NCBI GenBank assembly: GCA_004764695.1
Contig: SMSO01000014.1
Span: forward strand, 7,058,029-7,122,028
DNA from: Schizochytrium sp. TIO01
Lineage: Eukaryota > Protista > Bigyra: Labyrinthulomycetes
Reading direction: 5' to 3'
DNA length: 64,000 nucleotides
Position 1 is the stretch's first letter. Every line of letters begins with the position of its first letter. A program made the translations under genes and the position numbers. Under the pieces are notes generated by a model that did not search any database, was not told the DNA's origin, and worked only from the letters and a program-made list of their open reading frames with translations. Of the stretch, positions 2,041 to 24,565 are shown piece by piece.

Positions 2041-3570
2041 CTCGACGCGGTCGTGTCCAGCACGCCTCGTGTCGTCCGTCGCCCGCTCGCTTGCCCACTG
2101 GACCGTGCAAAGGCCGCCGCAATTGAGATTTGCTACTCCTTGAGCGGCTTTTGATGTGACTAGCGACTCGGAATTATACACCTTATTTAACTATGAATAT
2201 TGCACTAATACGCGCCAATAGCAGCAGCACTCAAAACATGGAGTCTACACACGGCAAGAGGAGTTCATTCTCCCTTAGTTTCAACCAAGGCAGCATCTCC
2301 AGCAGCAACTGGTGCATGAATTACAACCTCGCCACTCAGACTTGCATCGAAACGTTTGGAGTCGTGTCCACTTCAACTACTCCATTTCGGATCACAGATG
2401 TCCAGGAACACCTGCTCCTCCTCCTCCGTCCCTCTTTAGCCAAAGATGAACAACTCGATTTGGGTTCTAAGGAAAGAGAACAAAAGAACGAGGGAGCAAA
2501 AGAACACCGGCGGGTGGCGAAGTCATACAAGACCGTGGCAGTTCACGTGCGGAGCGCACCAGACCGAGGAGGGCTTGATTCTTGGCCCTGATTGTGTTGG
2601 TCCTTCAGGTAACTTACCTCCTCCAACGATTCCTCGACTTCTTGAACTCGCGTGTTTTGCTTTTTCGTCAATTAGACCCGATTGATTGAACGCAGCCCGA
2701 AGTTAGAATGTGGACGTCTCGTCGTCTTGACGATGACTTGAACTGGCGTTACCAGCGAAAGCTAACCGTCTCGAGTTCGTGGGTGTGGTGAACAATCTCA
2801 CAGATGCTTTTCGATGAAAAATCTAGTTTGGACTTTACCGCTTTTGATTCGAGTGTGAGCTTCCGAAGAGATTGAACCTCGTCGTCGCGAAGGTCCCCTT
2901 TGCCAAGATGTTATGCCGTTCTCCTTGATAGTGTTGTGTTGCACCGTCAACAGCCTTTGTCGTGGCGTCATGCATGTAATCATTGAAAGCTACAGGATAA
3001 ATAAAACAGAAGTGCATTGTGGAAGCATCTGTGAGACTCACTCCGCACGAAGCTGCCAAGCCGTCAAGCAGGCAGCCAGTCAGTCAGTCATCCAGTGGCC
3101 TAGGCCTCTCTCGTGTCTGCCTCCATCGAGTCTGAGCACTTCGAAGCCAAACGGGCAACATCTTTGGCCTTCATGGACTCGTTCTGCTTCAGAATACAGC
3201 ACAAAGGAATTGAGCGAATCGATCGAAGGATGCCTCAGAAGAATCCTTTTGGAGTCTTTCCCCCGCCCCGTCCTCCTAACCTATACACTAGTCTTCAGTA
3301 CGCCTCACTTTTTTGTCTTCCCTGTTTTTCCCATCTTTTCTCTTTGTCGATGATAGCTTTGAAAAGATGAGCACCGTTTCGGAATCCCGGAGCGACTGAC
3401 TGCCTCGGGCTCGCTCAGCAATCCCAGTTCCTCTTGGCGCAGTCCGCGAAGGCCGGTCTTCGTCTCGCGCCAGCCTTCCCTTTTCTCTTCCTCTTGCTTG
3501 CTAAGCACGTTCCTGCCTTCCACGTCTTCTGGTTTCCTTGGGTCTCTTGGATCCGCCTTCGCGAGGCACC

Positions 3571-5532
3571 ATGGACTTCATTCGCGTGCTGGTGCTCATC
3601 TGCTGCTGCCTGCTCAGTCTCGGCTCTTACTACTGCTTCGACCTTCCTGGCGCTCTTCCGGATGACTTTCGGCGTGTGCTAGCGCAAAACAACCCGGGCC
3701 AACAGGGTCTCTTTTACTCAATGTATTCGCTGCCCAACACGGTGCAACCCTTTGTCGGCGGCATCATCATTGATAAGGTGCTCGGTCTCCGTATTGGCGC
3801 CACAATTTGTTGCACGCTTGTTGCTATTGGGTGCTCCGTGGTTGCCTTTGCCGCGAGCGTCCCTGCCTGGTCTGGCACGAGCACCGCTTTCCTCGTCGGC
3901 GTCTCTGGTCGCTTCATCTTCGGTCTTGGTGGCGAGACGTTGGCAGTTTGTCAGAACGCATTTTGCGCCAAGTGGTTTCGCGGTGCAGATCTCGCCACTG
4001 CCTTTGCGATCGTGTTGAGTTTCGCTCGCGTGGGCAGCGCCGTCAACTTTGCCATCGAGCCCAAGCTTGCGTCAGAGTATAGCTTCTCTTTTGCGCTCTG
4101 GGTTAGCGCCGCCTTTTGCGTTCTCTCTGAGTTTGCATGCTTCTTGCTATCCTTCCTCGATATTCGCTACGAATACCTCACCGAGGACGAAGACAATGCC
4201 GAGGCTGTCGACATTGAGTCCAGCTCTGACCTTGACTCTGGTCTCAACAATCTCAACTCTGGTACTAGCTCTGATGCTCTATTGGACGTGAATGCCAGCA
4301 GCGACAGCCTCAATGAGAACCTCTTGGGAGGCCATGCCTCACGGCAGGCACGCCGGGGGTCTGAGGGAGATAGCCGGGGGTTAGCTATCGAGGAAGTTAC
4401 GCATGAGGGCATTGATGCTGCTAAGGCGGAAGAGGACACTGTGTGGTATGCTCTGCGGCAGGTCGTGGGGTACCGGGAGATGTTGATCTACTTAATTTGT
4501 GTTCAATTTTATGTTGCGGTGTTTATTTTCATTGCAGTGGCGTCAAAGTTTCTTACGGATACGTATGATGATATTGATGCAGTATCGGCGGGTCTACTCG
4601 TCTCGGTGCCGTACACAGTTAGTGCCATCGCATCGCCTTTGCTCGGCATGACAATGGATAAGGTCGGACGCGGCCTGATTTTTGTTGGACTGGCGTGCTT
4701 GAGTCTTTTCGGTGTGCACGCCACCTTTGCCATCATGCCACATAGCGTATCTCCTATGGCTGTCATGGTGTGGCTTGGCATCACCTATTCTACCTGCGCT
4801 GCCTCCCTCTGGCCAATGATTGTAAGTTTAATGACGCTCGCATCCAGGGTCTGTGATGTCTGCACTTTGCAACAGCACAATATTTTAGTAACAGCGATAT
4901 AAAAGCAATGGCGACTAACACGTGTTTTACATGACCTTATGTGTTTAATATTCTGATTGTTTCGTGTTTCTTCTTTGTACACCTTCGGATAAATCCAACC
5001 GAAATGTACATTCTGGCAATAATATTTGGACTTCTGGAAATTGAAATCAATATACGCACTTACCTTGCAAATCTATCTATGTTTATAGGCTGTGGTGGTA
5101 GAGTCCAAGTACATTAGTATGAGCTATGGCCTCATGATGAGCTTACAGAACACCGGGCTTGCTATTGCTCCAGCATTCATTATGAAGCTTGTTCCGTCAA
5201 CAGATAGTTCCCCGGAGGTGATCGCTGCAAATTACCGCACTATTGAGCTCATTTTTGCAGGTTGTGCAGCAGGCGCTTTCATTTGTACAGTTCTTTTGTA
5301 CTTTGTAGATCATGCTCACGGTGGTGGCGAGCTCAGCGCTGCAGCTTCTGCGATGCCGATGTCGGTGCAGCCTTCACCTCGTCTCAACCCTCTCAACCCC
5401 CGTGCCTCTCCATTCATTCGTCAGTCGAGCTTTCGGCCTTCAACACGGGCGCGCGAGGTTATTGCCCCCAAGACTCCGCACGCAATTCGTCAAAAGTACT
5501 TTCGCAAACTGCGCATCCAGTCCCACATTTAA
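3571..5532 (+). CDS. MFS transporter, MFSD1-like; two exons 3571-4821 and 5089-5532 (true start may lie upstream)
   Basis: Motifs LGSYYCFDLPGAL, GGIIIDKVLGLR, GRFIFGLGGE, KWFRG, ARVGS. Intron 4822-5088 (GTAAGT...TTATAG) joins WPMI|AVVVESKYISMSYGLMMSLQNTGLA in frame, matching the MFSD1 C-terminal pattern. Confidence 0.85.
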
Positions 5533-15374: not shown

Positions 15375-15415
<41 letters not shown>

Positions 15416-15759
15416 GAGAGAGAGAGAAAGCCGCGGCAAGTCTTTCGACCATAAGGGTCCACATACGCCATAAGCTAAGAGTGAATCTGCGGCTCCGAGG
15501 GCACGAGGCCGGCGCAGAGGCAGGCGTTTCTCTGGATATGCGGCAAAGGAATCAAACCTACTCGCTTTGTCGTCTGCGCGGTGCTTCAAGTTCACCCCAA
15601 AGCTGCACAAGAGCTGGCCGAACGACTCTTCTCTTGGTGTCAAAGGTACCGACCGTCGAGGGGCTAAAGGCTGAAAGACCCAGCGCTCGTTGCCCAAGTC
15701 TGAGGTTCCTCTTCAATTGAATCTCTTCTGCTTTTAGTCCAAAGTTGTGGTTTTTAAAC

Positions 15760-15866
15760 GGAAAAGGAAAAGGAAAAGACAAAGAAAAGGAAAAGGAAAA
15801 GGAAAAGGAAAAAGAAAAGGAAAAGGAAAAGGAAAAGGAAAAAGGAAAAGGAAAAGGAAAAGGAAA
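15760..15866. repeat. (GGAAAA)n hexanucleotide repeat
   Basis: Directly visible; gives rise to spurious KEKE/KRKR/FPFP ORFs. Confidence 0.9.
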
Positions 15867-17653
15867 GAAGAGTCAGAACTACAACAGCTCAGAGGAACGA
15901 GTCCGGAACGGTCCATCGCATCTTCTTCCGAAGGTGGTGGTAGGAGCCTACTACTACTGCTATTAAGTACTTCTCCAGAGTCCTGAATTCCGTAGAAACA
16001 ACTAGTAGTTAGCTAGGTACCTACTTCATTTTCTAAAAATCTATTAAAAATTGAATTGACCATTTTACTATTTTCTACATTCATTTGCAACTTCCTTTGT
16101 TTTGAATTTTTAAAATTAAAAAGGTCGAACTTGCGCGGAATGTGCCTCTTCCTCTGAAGTAGGTAAGTAAGTACCTATTCTTCTACCATCGATAATGGAG
16201 CGACTGCAATTCATGGGCGCTGCTCATGCTCGCTCGAGGCGATCGTGCGGTGGCGCTGGCGGAGCTGGTGTAGCACCTTCGTGGATACCTTTGGGAATAT
16301 GCACCTGTGCGCAAAGCGAGCGGATTAGATGGTTGGTACCAAGGCCGCTTTGTTTTGCTGGTTGAAACACATTCACGGCGGAAGAAGGATCCAAGAGCGA
16401 GCCCCAAATCGGGGCCCCAAATCTGACATTGCAGTGAAGAAGAGACATTCTTACCTTTGGATTGTGAAATATAATTTACAAAATAAATAAAATATATCCT
16501 ATCGAGAACAGGGACTCTTCGTGGGAGCCCACACCTGTGGCGAAGACGAGTGTCGAGAACGTTGTAGCAACTACATCATTCCCAGCGCCCCATGAGCAGG
16601 CAGATGGATACCTCGAACTGATTCTCGGCAGATCTTGGCCCACGTGACAAGTCTGTGCATCCTCATGTGCACCCTCGTGTCTGGATTCTCCTGGTATCAA
16701 AACTTGGTGAACGGACACGGTCACCAAGAAGCAGCAGGAATGCTGAACGTGGAGTGTGGATAAGCGAATTGAAATGATGGTGGTGTCGAAGGACCTGGAC
16801 ATCCCGTGTCTCAAGACAAATGATACCTGCTAGCTAGCTAGCTGCTACTTATACAGCTAGCTGCAGACGTGCTAGCAGAGTTGGCGATGATGACGTCAAG
16901 ATTTGCAAAAAGGTTGTACTACGACAATTTGATACTAGCATGTGTCTTCAAATGCAAAAACCCATCATTCTGCGGAGCTCTTTGATTTCCCGGAAGCCAG
17001 GACATCAGCAGCTGCATACGGCATTTGCAAAATTCAGCCTTTCCTGAAACAGGTTTCCTGGCGCAATACGCAACACCAAAACCACTCAACCCCTCGAGTG
17101 CGTGAGTATACCCACTATAATTCTACTAGGCCAACAATTAACGGTCTATCCTGCCCCAAAGCGGCCTAAACAAGTGGTCCATATTTCCTTCCCCAAAGAG
17201 GCCTATCGCAATCTCGAATATCTTTTGCACCCGCGAGTTGATATACTCTTCAATGATGCTGGAGAGTTGGTGTCCTTGACGCGCGCGCCTCGTGATGGCG
17301 TTTCTGGGCGGTGAATCTGCTCCGCCACAGGCACGTGGCCGGCGACCTGAGGTGATAAACGTGAAGCACGCAACTTCCTCTCCACGACTATACCGTTTTG
17401 GGCCCTGCCGGAGTCAGAGCCGCCTCGCGACGCAAGGCCGAGGGCGGCTTTCTTCGAGCGGCGGTGACGTTTTTTCGCCTCCGCCTCTTATTCCCCCTCT
17501 TTCTCTCCTTGGAGATAGATGCGTAGATCGAACAAACGAACATACTCACGACTGACGGCACGAGGGCGGGTTTACGGTAGCTGCGTGTAGCACTCCCCTA
17601 GCGCACCCCGCGGCGGCGGCGGTTCCACCTTAAAGTTGGCGATTTTGGTTTTC

Positions 17654-17761
17654 TCTTAGATTTTAAACTACAAAATTTGCAAAACTTGCATTTCATAGAA
17701 GGAGCTAAGACTCCATCACGGACTAGTTAGACTAACCCGCGACTCAATGAAATGATTTTTT
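17654..17761 (-). ncRNA. Putative omega-RNA (reRNA) scaffold of the Fanzor2; guide predicted to start at about 17654 and read into the flank
   Basis: Minus-strand fold by eye: 8-bp closing stem (17747-17754 with 17689-17696), 12-bp stem with three G-U pairs (17716-17742), and hairpin GGAG-UCUUAG-CUCC (17701-17714) whose loop is complementary to CUAAGA (17654-17659), forming a pseudoknot. Located directly after the Fanzor stop codon. Confidence 0.7.
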
Positions 17762-19618
17762 TTAAATCATGTCCTTGGATAGGTAGCGTAAAAGGATGCC
17801 TCTTGCGGCATGGACATCACGGTCTGCTACATGGTTGCACTTGAGATTAGGGCATTGGAAAACCTTGGATGCCCCGAGTTTATGGTGGAGGGTACCGCAC
17901 TCATTGCATGTTTTTGAAGTGTAGCTCTCTTGGCAAAGAACAAGCTTGCACCACGGGAACATCTCAGCCTTATGAATGAGAGCCTGGCGGAACCCAAAAT
18001 GGGACCAACGACACATCATTCGAACAGACTTCTTGGATATCCGTCGCTCCATCCTCCTGCTCATCTTAGAGGTTTCGAATTTGGGCAGGAGAATAACACG
18101 ATAGTTTTCACAAAGCCAAAGCGCGAGCTTGCGGTGAATCTCAGTGATCTTGTTCTTGATCTTGAGTTGGGCGCGATAGAAGGCGCGCTTCAAGGGGGTG
18201 TTGAAATCGTATGCAGTTTTCTTTTTATTTTCTTGAGCTTTATCAATCCTGCTTTGGATCTTATCAACGCGGCGACAGAGATAGAATATGGTTCTAAAAT
18301 CTTTCCCTGTGCCCCATTCAATGGCGCGGCCATCAGCATCATACATCGTCTGAAACGAGCGAACACCTGGATCTAGAGCAATGACACTGTGGTGCGCCTT
18401 GGGTGCCTGGTCCATTGGACGCTTTTCTTCTTCTCGTAAGAAGCAGAAGTACACATGCCCAAGGCGATTCATTTGCACACGCATGGCGTTCTTAATCTGA
18501 CTGGGGAACTTTTCTTTGCGCGTACGAAACTCTTTTAGAAAGCTGGTGGTCTTTGATTTCTCCGTATTCCAGATACGTGCGTTCACTTCGAAAATCTGTG
18601 ATTCATCACGCTTGGTCCGAAACTTATAAAAAGATTGCTCATGAACTTTCTTTTGTACAGCGAGTTCTTCGTTTTTGGCTCGTCCAGAGTTAAGAGCCTT
18701 GAAGAAATCCAGAATCCCGGAATCACGGATAGCCTGTGGGACCTCGAGAACCCATTCAGGAGCATCATGCCTTTCTTTAGATCGAACGGCTTTCTTTTCT
18801 CCATAGAGGGCACCATACGTTTGGGGATTCCCATCTTCATCTACTAAAACCTGCTTCGTCTTGGAATCCTTTTTGATGCACGCTTCTTGATGCAATTTGA
18901 TGGCTTCTTCCTCGCCCTTCGCCACGTCTCGGTGAAACGCAACGCCAGTATTGTAGGCTCTTCTAGTGACACCAAACCATTTAAGCAACTGTGTACGCTG
19001 ATCTTTAGTAGGGTATACCCTGACCTTTTTGGCACGGACAAGGTCATATTCTTTCTTGATGGTCTTGCGCGCCTTCGTGCGAGCTCGCTTCTTCCTCGCT
19101 GCGTCGTCGCCGTCTATTTTGCGCTGCTCGTTTTCCGTGATGCGATGCCACAAAGACGGTGATGATTCCGAGGAGGTCTTTGGTGAAGGTGTCTGCGTCT
19201 CCGGCATGTGCATCTTGGCCGTGTACCACGAGTTTGACATTTTTTCTTTCGAAAAGGTGTTCCAGGAGGTCGACTGCGATTCGCGCAAGTCGGTCGCGGT
19301 GCATGACCACAACTTGGCCGATTCCGCCGCGGTCACAGGCGTCCAGTAGGGAGCACAGGCCTTGGCGTTTGAAATTGACCCCGCTACCGATGTCTTTGTA
19401 GACGGCGGAAGCATCTGGGTAGGCGCGCTGGAGATCGCCAACCTGGCGTTCGAGGTCCTCCTTTTGCTTGGCCGAGGACACTCTGGCGTAGATAACGGTA
19501 CATCCAGAGCTGCGTTGCTCGCGGCCGGTGGAACCGCAATCAAAGATGCGCTCAACATCGTCGCAGGCGTAGATGCGCTTGCCTCCGGGGAAGCGCGCGC
19601 AGCGCACGCGTCCGCCAT
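17762..19618 (-). CDS. tnpB: Fanzor2 (IS607 TnpB-derived) RNA-guided DNA endonuclease; frame open from 19702, first ATG 19618, alternative ATG 19414
   Basis: HTH/WED region KKVRVYPTKDQRTQLLKWFGVTRRAYN; RuvC-I IALDPGVRSF (D444); LLPKFE with Pro (P540) at the canonical Glu site; relocated Glu in CQESYTSKTC (E592); Zn finger CNEC...CPNLKC; RuvC-III DRDVHAARGI (D629). Numbering follows the 646-aa ORF. Confidence 0.93.
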   Translation of the reverse strand: MADACAARASPEASASTPATMLSASLIAVPPAASNAALDVPLSTPECPRPSKRRTSNARLAISSAPTQMLPPSTKTSVAGSISNAKACAPYWTPVTAAESAKLWSCTATDLRESQSTSWNTFSKEKMSNSWYTAKMHMPETQTPSPKTSSESSPSLWHRITENEQRKIDGDDAARKKRARTKARKTIKKEYDLVRAKKVRVYPTKDQRTQLLKWFGVTRRAYNTGVAFHRDVAKGEEEAIKLHQEACIKKDSKTKQVLVDEDGNPQTYGALYGEKKAVRSKERHDAPEWVLEVPQAIRDSGILDFFKALNSGRAKNEELAVQKKVHEQSFYKFRTKRDESQIFEVNARIWNTEKSKTTSFLKEFRTRKEKFPSQIKNAMRVQMNRLGHVYFCFLREEEKRPMDQAPKAHHSVIALDPGVRSFQTMYDADGRAIEWGTGKDFRTIFYLCRRVDKIQSRIDKAQENKKKTAYDFNTPLKRAFYRAQLKIKNKITEIHRKLALWLCENYRVILLPKFETSKMSRRMERRISKKSVRMMCRWSHFGFRQALIHKAEMFPWCKLVLCQESYTSKTCNECGTLHHKLGASKVFQCPNLKCNHVADRDVHAARGILLRYLSKDMI

Positions 19619-19742
19619 CGGCCCAGCCCCGAAGGGCGCTTGCTGAGACCCCAAACTTCCGGTGAAAGAACTTTGCTGGTTTGTATTCGAGGTTTGCTCC
19701 ACTTGCAGTGTTTGGAGCTTGGCGGTTCCTTGGCCTCCCCAT
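19044..19742 (-). CDS. tnpA: IS607-family serine recombinase/transposase TnpA
   Basis: N-terminal MerR-like HTH (FGVSASALRGWADGGRVRCARFPGGKRIY), catalytic IYARVSSAKQKEDLERQ (S89), DIGSGVNFKRQGL, VVMHRDRLAR, DLLGIITVF..HHGKR. Confidence 0.95.
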   Translation of the reverse strand: MGRPRNRQAPNTASGANLEYKPAKFFHRKFGVSASALRGWADGGRVRCARFPGGKRIYACDDVERIFDCGSTGREQRSSGCTVIYARVSSAKQKEDLERQVGDLQRAYPDASAVYKDIGSGVNFKRQGLCSLLDACDRGGIGQVVVMHRDRLARIAVDLLEHLFERKNVKLVVHGQDAHAGDADTFTKDLLGIITVFVASHHGKRAAQNRRRRRSEEEASSHEGAQDHQERI

Positions 19743-21199
19743 TTTCTTACCTAACCTCCACTTCTTATTAAAGATCTAACTAAGTATAATATATGATTAA
19801 TATGAAACAAGCACATCGAAATATAAGTTATCGAAATTTTAACGGTTTTTGTCATACTGTTCATGAAACGTAGAACAAAGAGAGAGATTTGATATTGGTG
19901 GGTTTTTCCTTTCTCTGCTTTTCTCCTAATTCCGAGCTGCTAGGGCTGCGCTAGGAACTGTTACGGAGGCGATTCCTAGTGCGCAGGTAGATGGCCCCTA
20001 CTGTATCAGGAAAGGTACTAGTAGTAGTAGAGCTTACACTAAAGGGGCTTATGAGAGAGAAGAATTTGAGGCAAGTGCTAGAGTTCCTGATAAGTGACGG
20101 TTAGTGGGTGTTCCTGGGGTATCACCTAGCTAGCCAGTTGGTAAGAAGCACAGTATCTTGGATGCATGCTGGGGCGGGTCAGATTCCGGTGCGAAGGCAG
20201 CGAGGAGCCGTGAACGTGGCACTCGTCGGCCCGTCTCGCTCAGCTTTGGGAGCCATTTTGGGAGCTCGTTCATCGTTCTGGCTAGCCAGAGGGGCATGCA
20301 TGCCACAATCTCCCCATCGATCATCACTAAACCTCTGCAGCAAGCGCAGCACCGTAGTGCCTGCTACGGTTTAGGATAGGAGGGCGAGCATCTACATGCG
20401 CTTGCAATCTGTACCCTCCTGGACTTCGCTACGGAGATGAAGATAGATAGATAATGGAGGCACTTCTAGGGATTAGGATAGGAGGCGCGCAGGCAGCCGG
20501 GAGGGCAGTTAGCTAGCTAGCTAGCTACTAGCTAGTTAGTTTAACTAGTAGTTCAAGGCTGCGAGGATTCGTGGGACCCTCATCGACCAATTGGTGTGTT
20601 TCTTTGGCGAATGGAGTGTCTCACAGATGCGGTTGGGACTGCGATCTCAGCATTCAGTCAGTCAGTCAGTCAGTCCTGCCGTTAGTTTCTCTCGGCTGCC
20701 TGATCGCCGACCCGCCGTTGGAGTCAAGAAGGGCCATCCTTGCTTCCTTCCCTTCGTTCGCTCGCTCTCATCATAACTAATCTCAGCTGTGCTTTCTCTC
20801 TCTCTCCTTTCATAACGCCCAGAGAGAGCTCGCTCTGTCTGAACATGGTATTTCAAAACGAATTGAAAACCAACAAAATCAACAACGACAACAACGAGAA
20901 CAACCACCACAACAACGCATAATACCAGCAGACAGCAACAACAATGTAAACAACGAAAGCCTAACCGTGCGCTGCTGCCGCTACCGAGCTGACCGGGCTT
21001 GCTTGAATGAGTAAAGACGACGAATTGGTCTCACGAATTGGTCTCCACAAGGAGGAGGGCATACGGGCCCTCTTTCTTCCCTTCCCTGCGGTGGTTAGAC
21101 CAGTAGTTGGAGCGCCTCTGCTGTAAAGAGGCGGTGGTTAGTTAGTGAGGCCTTAGAGTACACGGTTAACTTAAGAGAAGAAGAGTAAGAAGAGCAAGG

Positions 21200-22932: not shown

Positions 22933-23140
22933 AGCGTGAGAAGGTTTTTCCTGCCTCATATTAAGGTGGCAAGGGCCTAGCGGAGTCCTAGGCGCGGCGG
23001 TAGGCAGCGGTAGACGGGGCTAAGCGCTCCGTTGAGGCGGATACGGCGCAGCAGAACCGCAACTGCAAAGGCGCTTGAGCAAAGAGCAAGAGCAGCGCAG
23101 AGAGAGAGAGAGAGAGCGCGAGGTGAGGCAGACAAAGAAG

Positions 23141-24565
23141 ATGGCAGACGCAGACAAGAACGACAAGAAGGCGGAGGAGGCAGGCGCCGCCGCCGCCTCG
23201 GCCAAGGGCGACGATGGCACGGAGACCAAGGTGTCCGTGGAGGTGAAGGAAGGCGAAGCGAAGGAAGACAAGAAGGAGGAAGAGAAGGAGACCAAGGAGG
23301 ACGCCATGGAGGTAGACGAGGGCAAGGCCAACGGCAAGAAGGAGACCAAGAAGGCCGCACCCAAGAAGGCCGCCGCCGAGAAGAAGGAGAAGAAGGAGAA
23401 GAAGGAGCCCGCAGAGGGCGAGAGGCGCAGTGGACGCTCCCGCAAGCAGGTGGAGCACTTCGCCCCGCCTGAGCCCTCCACCAAGGAGGAGGACGAATTC
23501 GTCGTGCCCAAGGGCAAGGGCATGGCCATCTCCGACATGGAGAAGATCAGCCACTTCCTTAACAAATTCCCCGTCAGCTCTGAGGAGATCCAGGCCCTTC
23601 ACAAGGCCTTCTACGGACGCAAGGGCAAGCGCGATGCCAAGAAGAACGTTCTTGCCTTCAGCGGACTCGTCTACCCTGACGGCAAGGCCGAGGCTGGCCG
23701 CGACAAGGTCTTCAACACTATCGGCGTATGGAAGATCGACTTTCTCCGCGAGATGATGGACAACTTTGGCGTCGACCGTGGCCAGAAGACCAAGAAGGAG
23801 GAGCTCCTCGACACATTCATTGACTGGCTTGAGAAGCCCACCTACGACCCGGAGATGGCTGTACCCGGAAAGGCCAAGAAGGCCCCCAAGAAGAAGGCTG
23901 CTCCTAAGAAGAAGAAGGCTGCACCCAAGAAGAAGGCCGCCGCAGGAACCAAGCGTAAGAAGTCCGAGGCCACCGAGGGCGACAAGGAGGGAGCCGAGAA
24001 GAAGGACGGCGAGGAGAAGCCCAAGAAGAAGGCTAAGAAGGAGACCACCGAGGGCGACAAGCCCAAGAAGGCTGCCGCCAAGAAGCCCGCTGCTGAGAAG
24101 AAGGAGAAGGCACCCAAGAAGGAGGGCGAGGAGAAGCCCAAGAAGGCTGCCGCCAAGAAGCCCGCCGCCGAGAAGAAGGAGAAGGCACCCAAGAAGGAGG
24201 GCGAGGAGAAGCCCAAGAAGGCTGCCGCCAAGAAGCCCGCCGCTGACAAGAAGGAGAAGTCCCCCAAGAAGCCCGCTGCCGAAAAGAAGGAGGCTGCCGC
24301 CAAGAAGCCTGCTGCCGAGAAGAAGGAGAAGGCACCCAAGAAGCCCGCTGCCGAGAAGAAGGAGGGCGCCGCAGAGAAGAAGTCTAAGAAGAAGCCATCG
24401 GACGAGCTCGTTAAGAAGATCAAGGACCGGCTTAAGTCCATCTTTGAGGAGGGCGACAGGGAGAAGCTCACCGTGGCCGCTGTGAAGAAAACAATTAAGA
24501 AGGACATCCCTGAGTCCGCTGATCACACCGCTCTCATTGGCGAGCTCATGAAGGAGCTCCTCTAA
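23141..24565 (+). CDS. DEK-like chromatin protein with Lys/Ala/Pro-rich repeats
   Basis: DEK core (ALHKAFYGRKGKRDAKKNVLAFSG, SAP-like FLREMMDNFGVDRGQKTKKEELLDTFIDWLEKP) and a DEK_C-like end (PSDELVKKIKDRLKSIFEEGDREKLTVAAVKK). First ATG 23141; strong codon bias. Confidence 0.85.
   Translation: MADADKNDKKAEEAGAAAASAKGDDGTETKVSVEVKEGEAKEDKKEEEKETKEDAMEVDEGKANGKKETKKAAPKKAAAEKKEKKEKKEPAEGERRSGRSRKQVEHFAPPEPSTKEEDEFVVPKGKGMAISDMEKISHFLNKFPVSSEEIQALHKAFYGRKGKRDAKKNVLAFSGLVYPDGKAEAGRDKVFNTIGVWKIDFLREMMDNFGVDRGQKTKKEELLDTFIDWLEKPTYDPEMAVPGKAKKAPKKKAAPKKKKAAPKKKAAAGTKRKKSEATEGDKEGAEKKDGEEKPKKKAKKETTEGDKPKKAAAKKPAAEKKEKAPKKEGEEKPKKAAAKKPAAEKKEKAPKKEGEEKPKKAAAKKPAADKKEKSPKKPAAEKKEAAAKKPAAEKKEKAPKKPAAEKKEGAAEKKSKKKPSDELVKKIKDRLKSIFEEGDREKLTVAAVKKTIKKDIPESADHTALIGELMKELL
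24055..24375 (+). repeat. Coding minisatellite: 75-nt unit (EEKPKKAAAKKPAAEKKEKAPKKEG) plus shorter 36-39-nt units
   Basis: Units start at 24128 and 24203 (75-nt period); shorter KKPAAEKKE units follow. Confidence 0.9.

Follow-up and report, generated by a model that had tools for sequence, protein, structure and literature searches.

A well-preserved IS607-type transposon with nested tnpA and Fanzor2 genes in the genome of the protist Schizochytrium sp. TIO01

Elements that join an IS607-type transposase (TnpA) to a Fanzor2 protein have been known in protists and giant viruses since 2013 (Bao & Jurka, PMC3627910), and the activity of Fanzor2 itself has been established for the Nlov and Mme proteins (PMC10432273) and for Apm (PMC11832414), the known target-adjacent motifs (TAMs) being CCG, TAG and GGG (PMC10432273, PMC11832414). 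Fanzor2 proteins are marked by the zinc-finger/RuvC-III signature [TS][TS]xxC4...RD (Bao & Jurka, PMC3627910), by a rearranged RuvC-II Glu site (PMC11832414) and by an N-terminal domain, comprising RuvC-R and thumb, that is described as unique to Fanzor2 (Schargel et al., PMC11832414). Here we analyze a 64,000-nt stretch of DNA from the labyrinthulomycete Schizochytrium sp. TIO01 (GenBank assembly GCA_004764695.1, contig SMSO01000014.1, positions 7,058,029 to 7,122,028; hereafter the window), in which an earlier reading of the bare sequence, the original prediction, had placed an IS607 element encoding a candidate RNA-guided nuclease system. At window 17653-19859, on the minus strand, lies what we hold, with a probability of roughly 0.85, to be a recently active DNA transposon of the IS607 family, present on a protist nuclear chromosome as a complete, intact and autonomous copy. 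Judged against the described systems, the element is a new, unusually well-preserved and recently active member of the known IS607/Fanzor2 kind.

Extent, transposase and genomic copies

Searching the source assembly (64 Mb in 37 contigs, about 46% GC, with TTAGG-type repeats) with the element DNA returned 61 matches. More than 20 of these are full-length, spread over at least 12 contigs; identity is 99-100% in five copies, 94-96% in about ten and 67-90% in the others. Every copy stops matching at the same two points, and we therefore set the bounds of the element at 17653-19859 (2,207 bp), where 19 other genomic copies leave off. The element is thus complete, as first proposed, with its ends moved by the copy comparison from 17654 to 17653 on the right and from 19870 to 19859 on the left. 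The number of full-length copies, their distinct flanks, the five at 99-100% identity and the seven of 20 examined that keep both genes intact likewise support the suggestion of a recent, possibly still mobile, insertion.

The left end opens with CAGTATGACA and the right end closes with ...CTAAGAG; directly outside CAG...CTAAGAG the flanks diverge in about 20 copies, each site having an unrelated flank. At the left junction, the terminal CAG (19857-19859, minus strand) is the last trinucleotide common to the copies, and the bases upstream of it differ. No terminal inverted repeats were found in the element, nor any target-site duplication. AG is present at both junctions (C-AG-TATG... and ...CTAAG-AG), as read from the junctions only. 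Since the left junction is always CAG and the right end finishes in AG, we propose CAG as a predicted three-nucleotide TAM and AG as the likely crossover dinucleotide. The crossover dinucleotide of IS607 is GG. Inside the left junction, an AT-rich untranslated region of 117 nt (19743-19859, minus strand) is the fastest-evolving part of the element between subfamilies, with 8.5% fixed differences, and presumably serves as promoter and TnpA-binding end.

The first gene, tnpA (19044-19742, minus strand), encodes a 232-aa serine recombinase with an N-terminal MerR-like helix-turn-helix (HTH) and a resolvase catalytic domain, and is followed on the same strand by a tnpB-type gene that overlaps it by 575 nt. 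TnpA matches the NCBIfam equivalog for the IS607 transposase, NF033518, over residues 26-210 (E 4.5e-42; 143.7 bits against a curated cut-off of 110), as well as Pfam Resolvase (E 6.7e-20), with the MerR-type HTH at residues 28-66 and the resolvase domain at 83-216. The YARVSS motif (in VIYARVSSAKQ) occupies residues 85-90, window 19473-19490, and is intact. These results agree with the original prediction in its association of the locus with an IS607 serine recombinase, in the intact YARVSS and in its statement that both open reading frames (ORFs), which lie on the minus strand, run free of stops and frameshifts. Relatives of TnpA are abundant among metagenome proteins, at up to 62% identity.

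Within the genome, a profile search gave 46 TnpA matches, 21 of them above the curated cut-off. Of the 20 copies examined, 10 have an intact TnpA and seven have both ORFs intact (the window copy, L002-L005, L007 and L013). The occurrence of young copies at many sites lends indirect support to a putative TnpA-dependent excision as a circle and reinsertion.

A derivative subfamily of at least five copies (L016, at 3505-3799; L017; L018; and two more on C13) carries a 295-bp insertion with (CCTAA)5 in tnpA, at element position 199/200, equivalent to window ~19660. We considered and rejected an intron: the insertion is without GT-AG ends and belongs to a dispersed repeat that comes in pairs about 5.5 kb apart, that is, a solo long terminal repeat (LTR). 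Because these copies, broken in tnpA, occupy different sites and still have an open nuclease frame of 617 codons, the tnpA-defective derivative was apparently mobilized in trans. Two young copies (L002, 3738-4999, and L008, 848-1379) each face, head-to-head and at about 30 bp or less, the left end of an old and diverged copy from a related family, and at L010 an old copy lies about 280 bp past the right end; this may reflect insertion near existing ends.

The Fanzor2 nuclease

The long open nuclease frame (19702-17762, minus strand) spans 646 aa and opens at a GTG at 19702; its first ATG is at 19618, which gives a gene of 618 aa plus stop (17762-19618, minus strand). The original prediction had described a 646-aa frame with a RuvC triad and a zinc finger, of which the motifs stand and the start is revised. 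We retain the 646-aa numbering for catalytic and cysteine residues, and "model residues" refers to the AlphaFold2 model of the nuclease. The protein matches the TnpB family models (guided_TnpB, E 1.3e-25), with TNB zinc-ribbon and HTH_OrfB domains found by Pfam and NCBIfam.

The active site is fully conserved in alignments of 14 and of 72 homologues, by which invariance was judged. RuvC-I Asp444 (VIALDPG; 18371-18373, minus strand) and RuvC-III Asp629 (ADRD; 17816-17818, minus strand) both occupy invariant columns. At the canonical RuvC-II Glu position stands an invariant Pro540 (18083-18085, minus strand), aligning with the Glu of ISDra2 TnpB in "GTEHL", and the relocated catalytic Glu592 (QESYTSKTC; 17927-17929, minus strand), also invariant, aligns with the Glu of ApmFz2 in "NEYLTTKTC"; both alignments accord with the earlier reading of this pair of substitutions as a Fanzor signature. 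Downstream, a Cys4 zinc finger with invariant cysteines C599, C602, C617 and C622 (17837-17908, minus strand) is recognized as Pfam PF07282, the Cas12f1-like TNB domain (E 5.6e-13). Glu592 and the four cysteines lie in QESYTSKTCNECG...CPNLKC, and the zinc-finger segment as a whole, ESYTSKTCNECG...CPNLKC...ADRD, fits the [TS][TS]xxC4...RD signature.

Among solved structures the best match is mimivirus Fanzor2, 9b0l, both by phmmer (E 1.3e-18) and by profile (E 3.3e-48). The AlphaFold2 model, built from 72 sequences, reaches a mean predicted local distance difference test score (pLDDT) of 82.3 and a predicted template modeling score of 0.78, and its best fold match is again 9b0l (Foldseek E 2.1e-18; VIA-align Z 22.9 over 429 residues, root-mean-square deviation 4.3). 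ISDra2 and ISFba1 TnpB are the runners-up with Z of 19-20, and Cas12f reaches about 15.

In a maximum-likelihood tree of 53 proteins, which was drawn without the characterized Fanzor2s (Apm, Nlov, Mme), the window protein and the product of a 94%-identical MMETSP transcript fall in a 16-row clade (support 100) together with a Durusdinium protein and metagenome proteins. This clade is nested in one of 24 rows (Shimodaira-Hasegawa approximate likelihood-ratio test, 99) whose only named members are eukaryotic (MMETSP, Durusdinium) and whose other members are mostly metagenome proteins; cyanobacterial, Poribacteria and other bacterial TnpBs form a separate clade of 23 rows. With the TnpB models matched, the Fanzor2 structure 9b0l as best match, the RuvC-II Glu rearranged and the protein outside the bacterial clade, the original assignment of the nuclease to Fanzor2 is supported. 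By analogy with its characterized relatives, this Fanzor2 would be expected to perform RNA-guided, TAM-dependent cleavage.

A basic stretch, RKKRARTKARKTIKK (19052-19096, minus strand), is inserted between the N-terminal domain and the first WED strand. Of four aligned relatives from the eukaryote clade, two share it with the window protein; the bacterial relatives all lack it, and it appears to be what is new in part of the eukaryote clade. From the Fanzor literature (PMC10530073), it is plausible as a candidate nuclear localization signal (NLS).

The homologue set also holds loci whose source labels deserve caution. L035, an IMG/VR contig of 252 kb, carries a nested tnpA/nuclease pair at 2383-4009; its nuclease groups with bacterial TnpBs beside one from a Riflebacteria metagenome-assembled genome (MAG), which makes it a doubtful example of a giant-virus copy, as the contig may not be from a eukaryotic giant virus. 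On a 1,994-bp "Bacteroidetes MAG" contig (L046) the nuclease sits inside the eukaryote-associated clade, and on a 793-bp "Gammaproteobacteria MAG" contig outside the tree (L118) it is 49% identical to the window protein, well above the bacterial loci; these two contigs are probably misbinned eukaryotic or viral DNA.

Dual coding of tnpA and the nuclease

The overlap of the two genes is a dual-coding stretch of 575 nt (19044-19618, minus strand), with tnpA in one frame and the first 192 Fanzor2 codons in the +1 frame; counted from the GTG, residues 1-219 of the 646-aa frame overlap tnpA. Several independent lines of evidence indicate that the open +1 frame across tnpA is not an accident. Shuffling synonymous codons of tnpA yields a mean of 3.3 stops in the +1 frame against none observed (P 0.006), and the same procedure on a metagenome relative yields 5.9 against none (P 1e-4). 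The N-terminal 200 residues of the nuclease align among homologues at about 45% identity, and an IMG/VR homologue without any tnpA retains the PYWT, S..L[WF] and NSWFTVK motifs. In transcript data, two MMETSP ORFs of 601 and 617 aa, both marked complete and 94-95% identical to the nuclease, show that a close relative transcribes the whole nuclease frame, tnpA overlap included.

The overlap also encodes a recognizable fold. The Fanzor2-specific N-terminal domain (19049-19357, minus strand), equivalent to RuvC-R and thumb of ApmFz2, lies wholly within tnpA. Model residues 89-191 (frame residues 116-218) are predicted to be folded, with block-mean pLDDT of 59-95, mostly above 70, and align with ApmFz2 (9b0l) from its residue 53. 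For every chain of TnpB or Cas12f, in contrast, the alignment sets in only at about model residue 192. L79 is matched by the profile from residue 73 onward and, like the window protein, has the NSW[FY] motif.

Comparison of the young subfamily with the 95% subfamily points the same way: fixed differences amount to 1.4% in the overlap and 1.6% where only tnpA is encoded, and reach 5.8% where only the nuclease is encoded and 8.5% in the left untranslated region. Overlap and nuclease-only sequence differ in this respect (P 7e-6), and the nuclease-only differences stand at 43 nonsynonymous to 31 synonymous. In an older subfamily (L008, L011-L014 and L016-L018), the nuclease ATG at element position 242 (window 19618) has become ACG and a new ATG has arisen at position 290, 48 nt downstream, both changes being synonymous in tnpA.

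Related bacterial loci place the origin of this arrangement. In all 75 of the loci with both genes, the nuclease is in the +1 frame of tnpA, that frame being open across 332-1,253 nt of tnpA (median 611), and the N-terminal domains of these bacterial relatives carry the same motifs. The bacterial nuclease ATG usually lies 7-127 nt past the tnpA ATG (47 loci in which both ORFs are long), and that of the window copy at +124. Because the nesting is present in 75 of 75 related bacterial loci, it is ancestral, inherited from bacterial IS607 ancestors and not invented in eukaryotes. We accordingly rejected the idea that the overlap originated as a eukaryote-specific adaptation for leaky scanning, although it may still be put to that use. 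The next two ATGs after that of tnpA are in the nuclease frame (+124 and +184), as are the next three in a metagenome relative.

It is possible to assemble these observations into a single account, which we would put at even odds: the Fanzor2 N-terminal domain would be an overprinted segment, written in the +1 frame across nearly all of tnpA, that was born as a dual-coding block of 330-800 nt (median ~610) in the bacterial IS607 ancestors and kept through transfer into eukaryotes, physically locking transposase and nuclease together; in eukaryotes, the nuclease AUG would come second on one capped mRNA, so that both proteins could be made by leaky scanning. The Fanzor and TnpB literature examined makes no mention of the tnpA/nuclease overlap, and a full-text search joining IS607 or TnpB with overprinting brought up no paper on IS607 or TnpB among the results listed. 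Dual coding is a property of the whole clade and, to our knowledge, one apparently undiscussed in print.

Right end, alternative readings and relation to known systems

The last 210 nt of the element (17653-17862, minus strand), comprising the right end and a candidate omega-RNA scaffold, show no fixed difference between subfamilies; in the non-coding right end, 0 of 112 sites differ, compared with 5.8% in nuclease-only coding sequence (P 0.003). The final 138 nt fold into four hairpins, which occupy the last ~125 nt, one of them across the stop codon, with a minimum free energy of -34.2 kcal/mol (z -3.3). Both the arrangement of hairpins and the block GAAATGCAAGTTTTGCAAATTTT...CTAAGNG are found again in metagenome relatives and in families with an identity of only 67-70%, and in the proposed structure 83.6% of cells are paired, as against 38-48% with slid partners. 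A covariance model finds one match in the window, at the end of the element, and recovers the within-genome families and only one metagenome relative; RNAalifold on a broad alignment of 20 sequences gives only one 5-bp hairpin. The right end is thus plausible, from its sequence, as a well-placed, conserved and structured candidate omega-RNA scaffold. The host DNA just past it (17633-17652, minus strand), which is unique in the genome, is a putative guide source by analogy with TnpB and Fanzor omega-RNAs (PMC10432273).

Taken together, the parts suggest how such an element might work. TnpA would cut it out in circular form and put it back in at a short crossover, probably AG, with neither inverted repeats nor a duplication left behind. 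The 618-aa Fanzor2, a TnpB-type RuvC nuclease with a relocated RuvC-II Glu, zinc finger, N-terminal domain and NLS-like basic insert, could be made alongside TnpA by leaky scanning or an internal start, its AUG being second on the message. From the structured right end an omega-RNA would be transcribed, taking its guide from the host DNA past that end, and the Fanzor2-RNA complex may then cut CAG-flanked empty sites, homologous repair copying the element back, as by analogy with bacterial TnpB.

Some results weigh against this picture of an active, RNA-guided element. An empty site or second allele of this insertion was sought in the assembly and none was found, so that TAM and crossover are read from the junctions only. 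At the right end, covariation is weak, with five pairs changed on both sides, a level reached by 78 of 500 shuffles; since it is not significant, the omega-RNA case rests on conservation and position. A search of Rfam gave no relevant family, its sole match being a chance hit to mir-208 (E 0.12). The AUG of tnpA stands in a strong context (AAAATGG), which disfavors efficient leaky scanning and makes an internal transcript start an equally possible route to the nuclease. As to expression, the sequencing runs guessed to be RNA show a depth of 4-10x in the flanks and 266-1,041x in the element; this is the pattern of DNA from a multi-copy repeat, and we therefore read them as low-coverage DNA and not as evidence that this copy is expressed. 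The only run certain to be oligo-dT, from another organism, yielded two contigs of 331 and 240 nt at a depth of about 3, and assembled contigs cannot reveal RNA ends.

Might the element be a young but already inert relic, its ORFs intact for lack of time and neither TnpA nor Fanzor2 acting today? Many members of the family are broken, with tnpA stops in about half of the copies and frameshifts in old families of 67-85% identity, and the sequencing runs gave no transcript of this copy. However, subfamily-fixed differences reveal purifying selection on both genes and on the right end, the five 99-100% copies sit at different sites, both ORFs survive in 7 of the 20 copies inspected, and related transcripts have complete ORFs, so we regard an inert relic as unlikely. 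Quite unlikely, in our view, is that the overlap goes untranslated, with an internal Met (at 154, 163 or 165 of the frame) as the true start of the nuclease and with the open frame as a by-product of tnpA codon usage. These Mets all lie downstream of the start of the folded part at model residue 89 (frame residue 116), a part that matches the ApmFz2 N-terminal domain; the tnpA-less homologue keeps the same motifs, no stop interrupts the +1 frame in any of the 75 bacterial loci, independent lineages keep it open more than shuffling predicts, and the loss of the ATG at 242 in one subfamily is accompanied by the tnpA-synonymous gain of another 48 nt downstream. What speaks for an internal start is that model residues 1-88 are predicted to be disordered and that other-frame translations of a conserved gene seem conserved of themselves.

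Finally, the prokaryotic character of the IS607 family, the enrichment of Fanzor2 in giant viruses (PMC10530073) and the presence of homologues on IMG/VR contigs might all hint at bacterial or giant-virus contamination, a misassembly or an integrated giant-virus region. The setting of the element argues otherwise. Its neighbors are ordinary eukaryotic genes (M13 peptidase, Na/Ca exchanger, SRAP, RING, EF-hand and DAHP synthase), and copies lie amid ordinary host genes on at least 12 large contigs; its GC is like that of its surroundings; and sequencing runs of at least eight labeled organisms hold the element, two of these runs also holding the flanks of this copy. With ordinary neighbors, unremarkable GC and multiple independent runs, and with a protein outside the bacterial clade, such an origin is very unlikely; the combination of a bacterial TnpB placement and a misassembled contaminant, which the original prediction had named as fatal to it, is not what the data show. 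Its description of the neighboring genes as intron-containing is, for its part, not borne out, since those checked show long ORFs with no interruption, of 807 aa for the M13 peptidase, 374 aa for DAHP synthase and 574 aa for the Na/Ca exchanger. We thus return to an intact, recently active IS607-family element of the protist nucleus as the preferred reading.

Two further stretches of the window call for brief comment. Window 22988-24565 is GC-rich (0.60) and strongly AT-skewed, with long frames on both strands (a Leu/Gly-rich frame of 512 aa on the minus strand and one of 496 aa on the plus strand), and is probably a low-complexity, repeat-coded gene. Window 15400-15920 consists of (TA)n and a long GAGAAA/GGAAAA-type microsatellite, giving rise to spurious Lys/Glu/Gly-rich ORFs.

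The family has much to offer for experimental follow-up. Many near-identical intact copies in a culturable marine protist bring together a transposase, a compact 618-aa nuclease with a likely NLS and a scaffold, making it a good test ground for what Fanzor2 does for its transposon in eukaryotic cells, as well as a source of a candidate genome-editing enzyme. A natural experiment on mobilization in trans is provided by the subfamily that spread even though a solo LTR disrupts its tnpA. If translation data bear out the dual coding, this would be a long and ancient overlapping gene pair kept from cyanobacteria to eukaryotes; it would account for tnpA and this nuclease clade moving jointly, and would point to an overprinting origin for a domain seen by electron cryo-microscopy.

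Among known systems, mimivirus Fanzor2 (ApmFz2/L79, PDB 9B0L, ISvMimi) shares with the present protein the WED-REC-RuvC-zinc-finger core, the relocated RuvC-II Glu, a RuvC-R/thumb with NSW[FY], a disordered N-terminus and the association with an IS607 TnpA. The two differ in sequence (about 19% identity), in setting (more than 20 copies in a cellular protist, as against three in a virus), in the extra basic insert before the WED strand here and in TAM (predicted CAG versus GGG). By description, NlovFz2 from Naegleria lovaniensis and MmeFz2 from Mercenaria mercenaria are similar in being eukaryotic, nuclear and multi-copy, with an omega-RNA at the 3' end and TAMs of three nucleotides that finish in G (CCG, TAG), a pattern that the junction CAG fits (PMC10432273). 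ACa-1/2 of Acanthamoeba castellanii and the Phytophthora Fanzor2 elements likewise combine TnpA and Fanzor2 in a protist genome, with neither terminal inverted repeats nor target-site duplications (PMC3627910); the present element differs from them in its host lineage, in belonging to a young family with many intact copies and in having a tnpA-disrupted derivative subfamily.

On the bacterial side, the IS607 elements of the Fanzor2-like TnpB clade (cyanobacteria, Poribacteria and others; for example Arthrospira ISArma1-type; Yoon et al. 2023, PMC10711439) have the same gene order, +1 nesting, N-terminal motifs and relocated Glu, but their nucleases are 28-31% identical, fall in a separate clade and are without the NLS-like basic insert. 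In them the nuclease ATG is mostly 7-13 nt away from that of tnpA, compared with 124 nt here. More distant are ISDra2 and ISFba1 TnpB (PDB 8H1J, 8EXA, 8IAZ), transposon RNA-guided nucleases whose guide RNA derives from the right end and whose core fold is shared here; they lack the N-terminal domain, aligning from model residue about 192, and ISDra2 TnpB moreover keeps its catalytic Glu at the canonical RuvC-II site in an element that uses a Y1 transposase.

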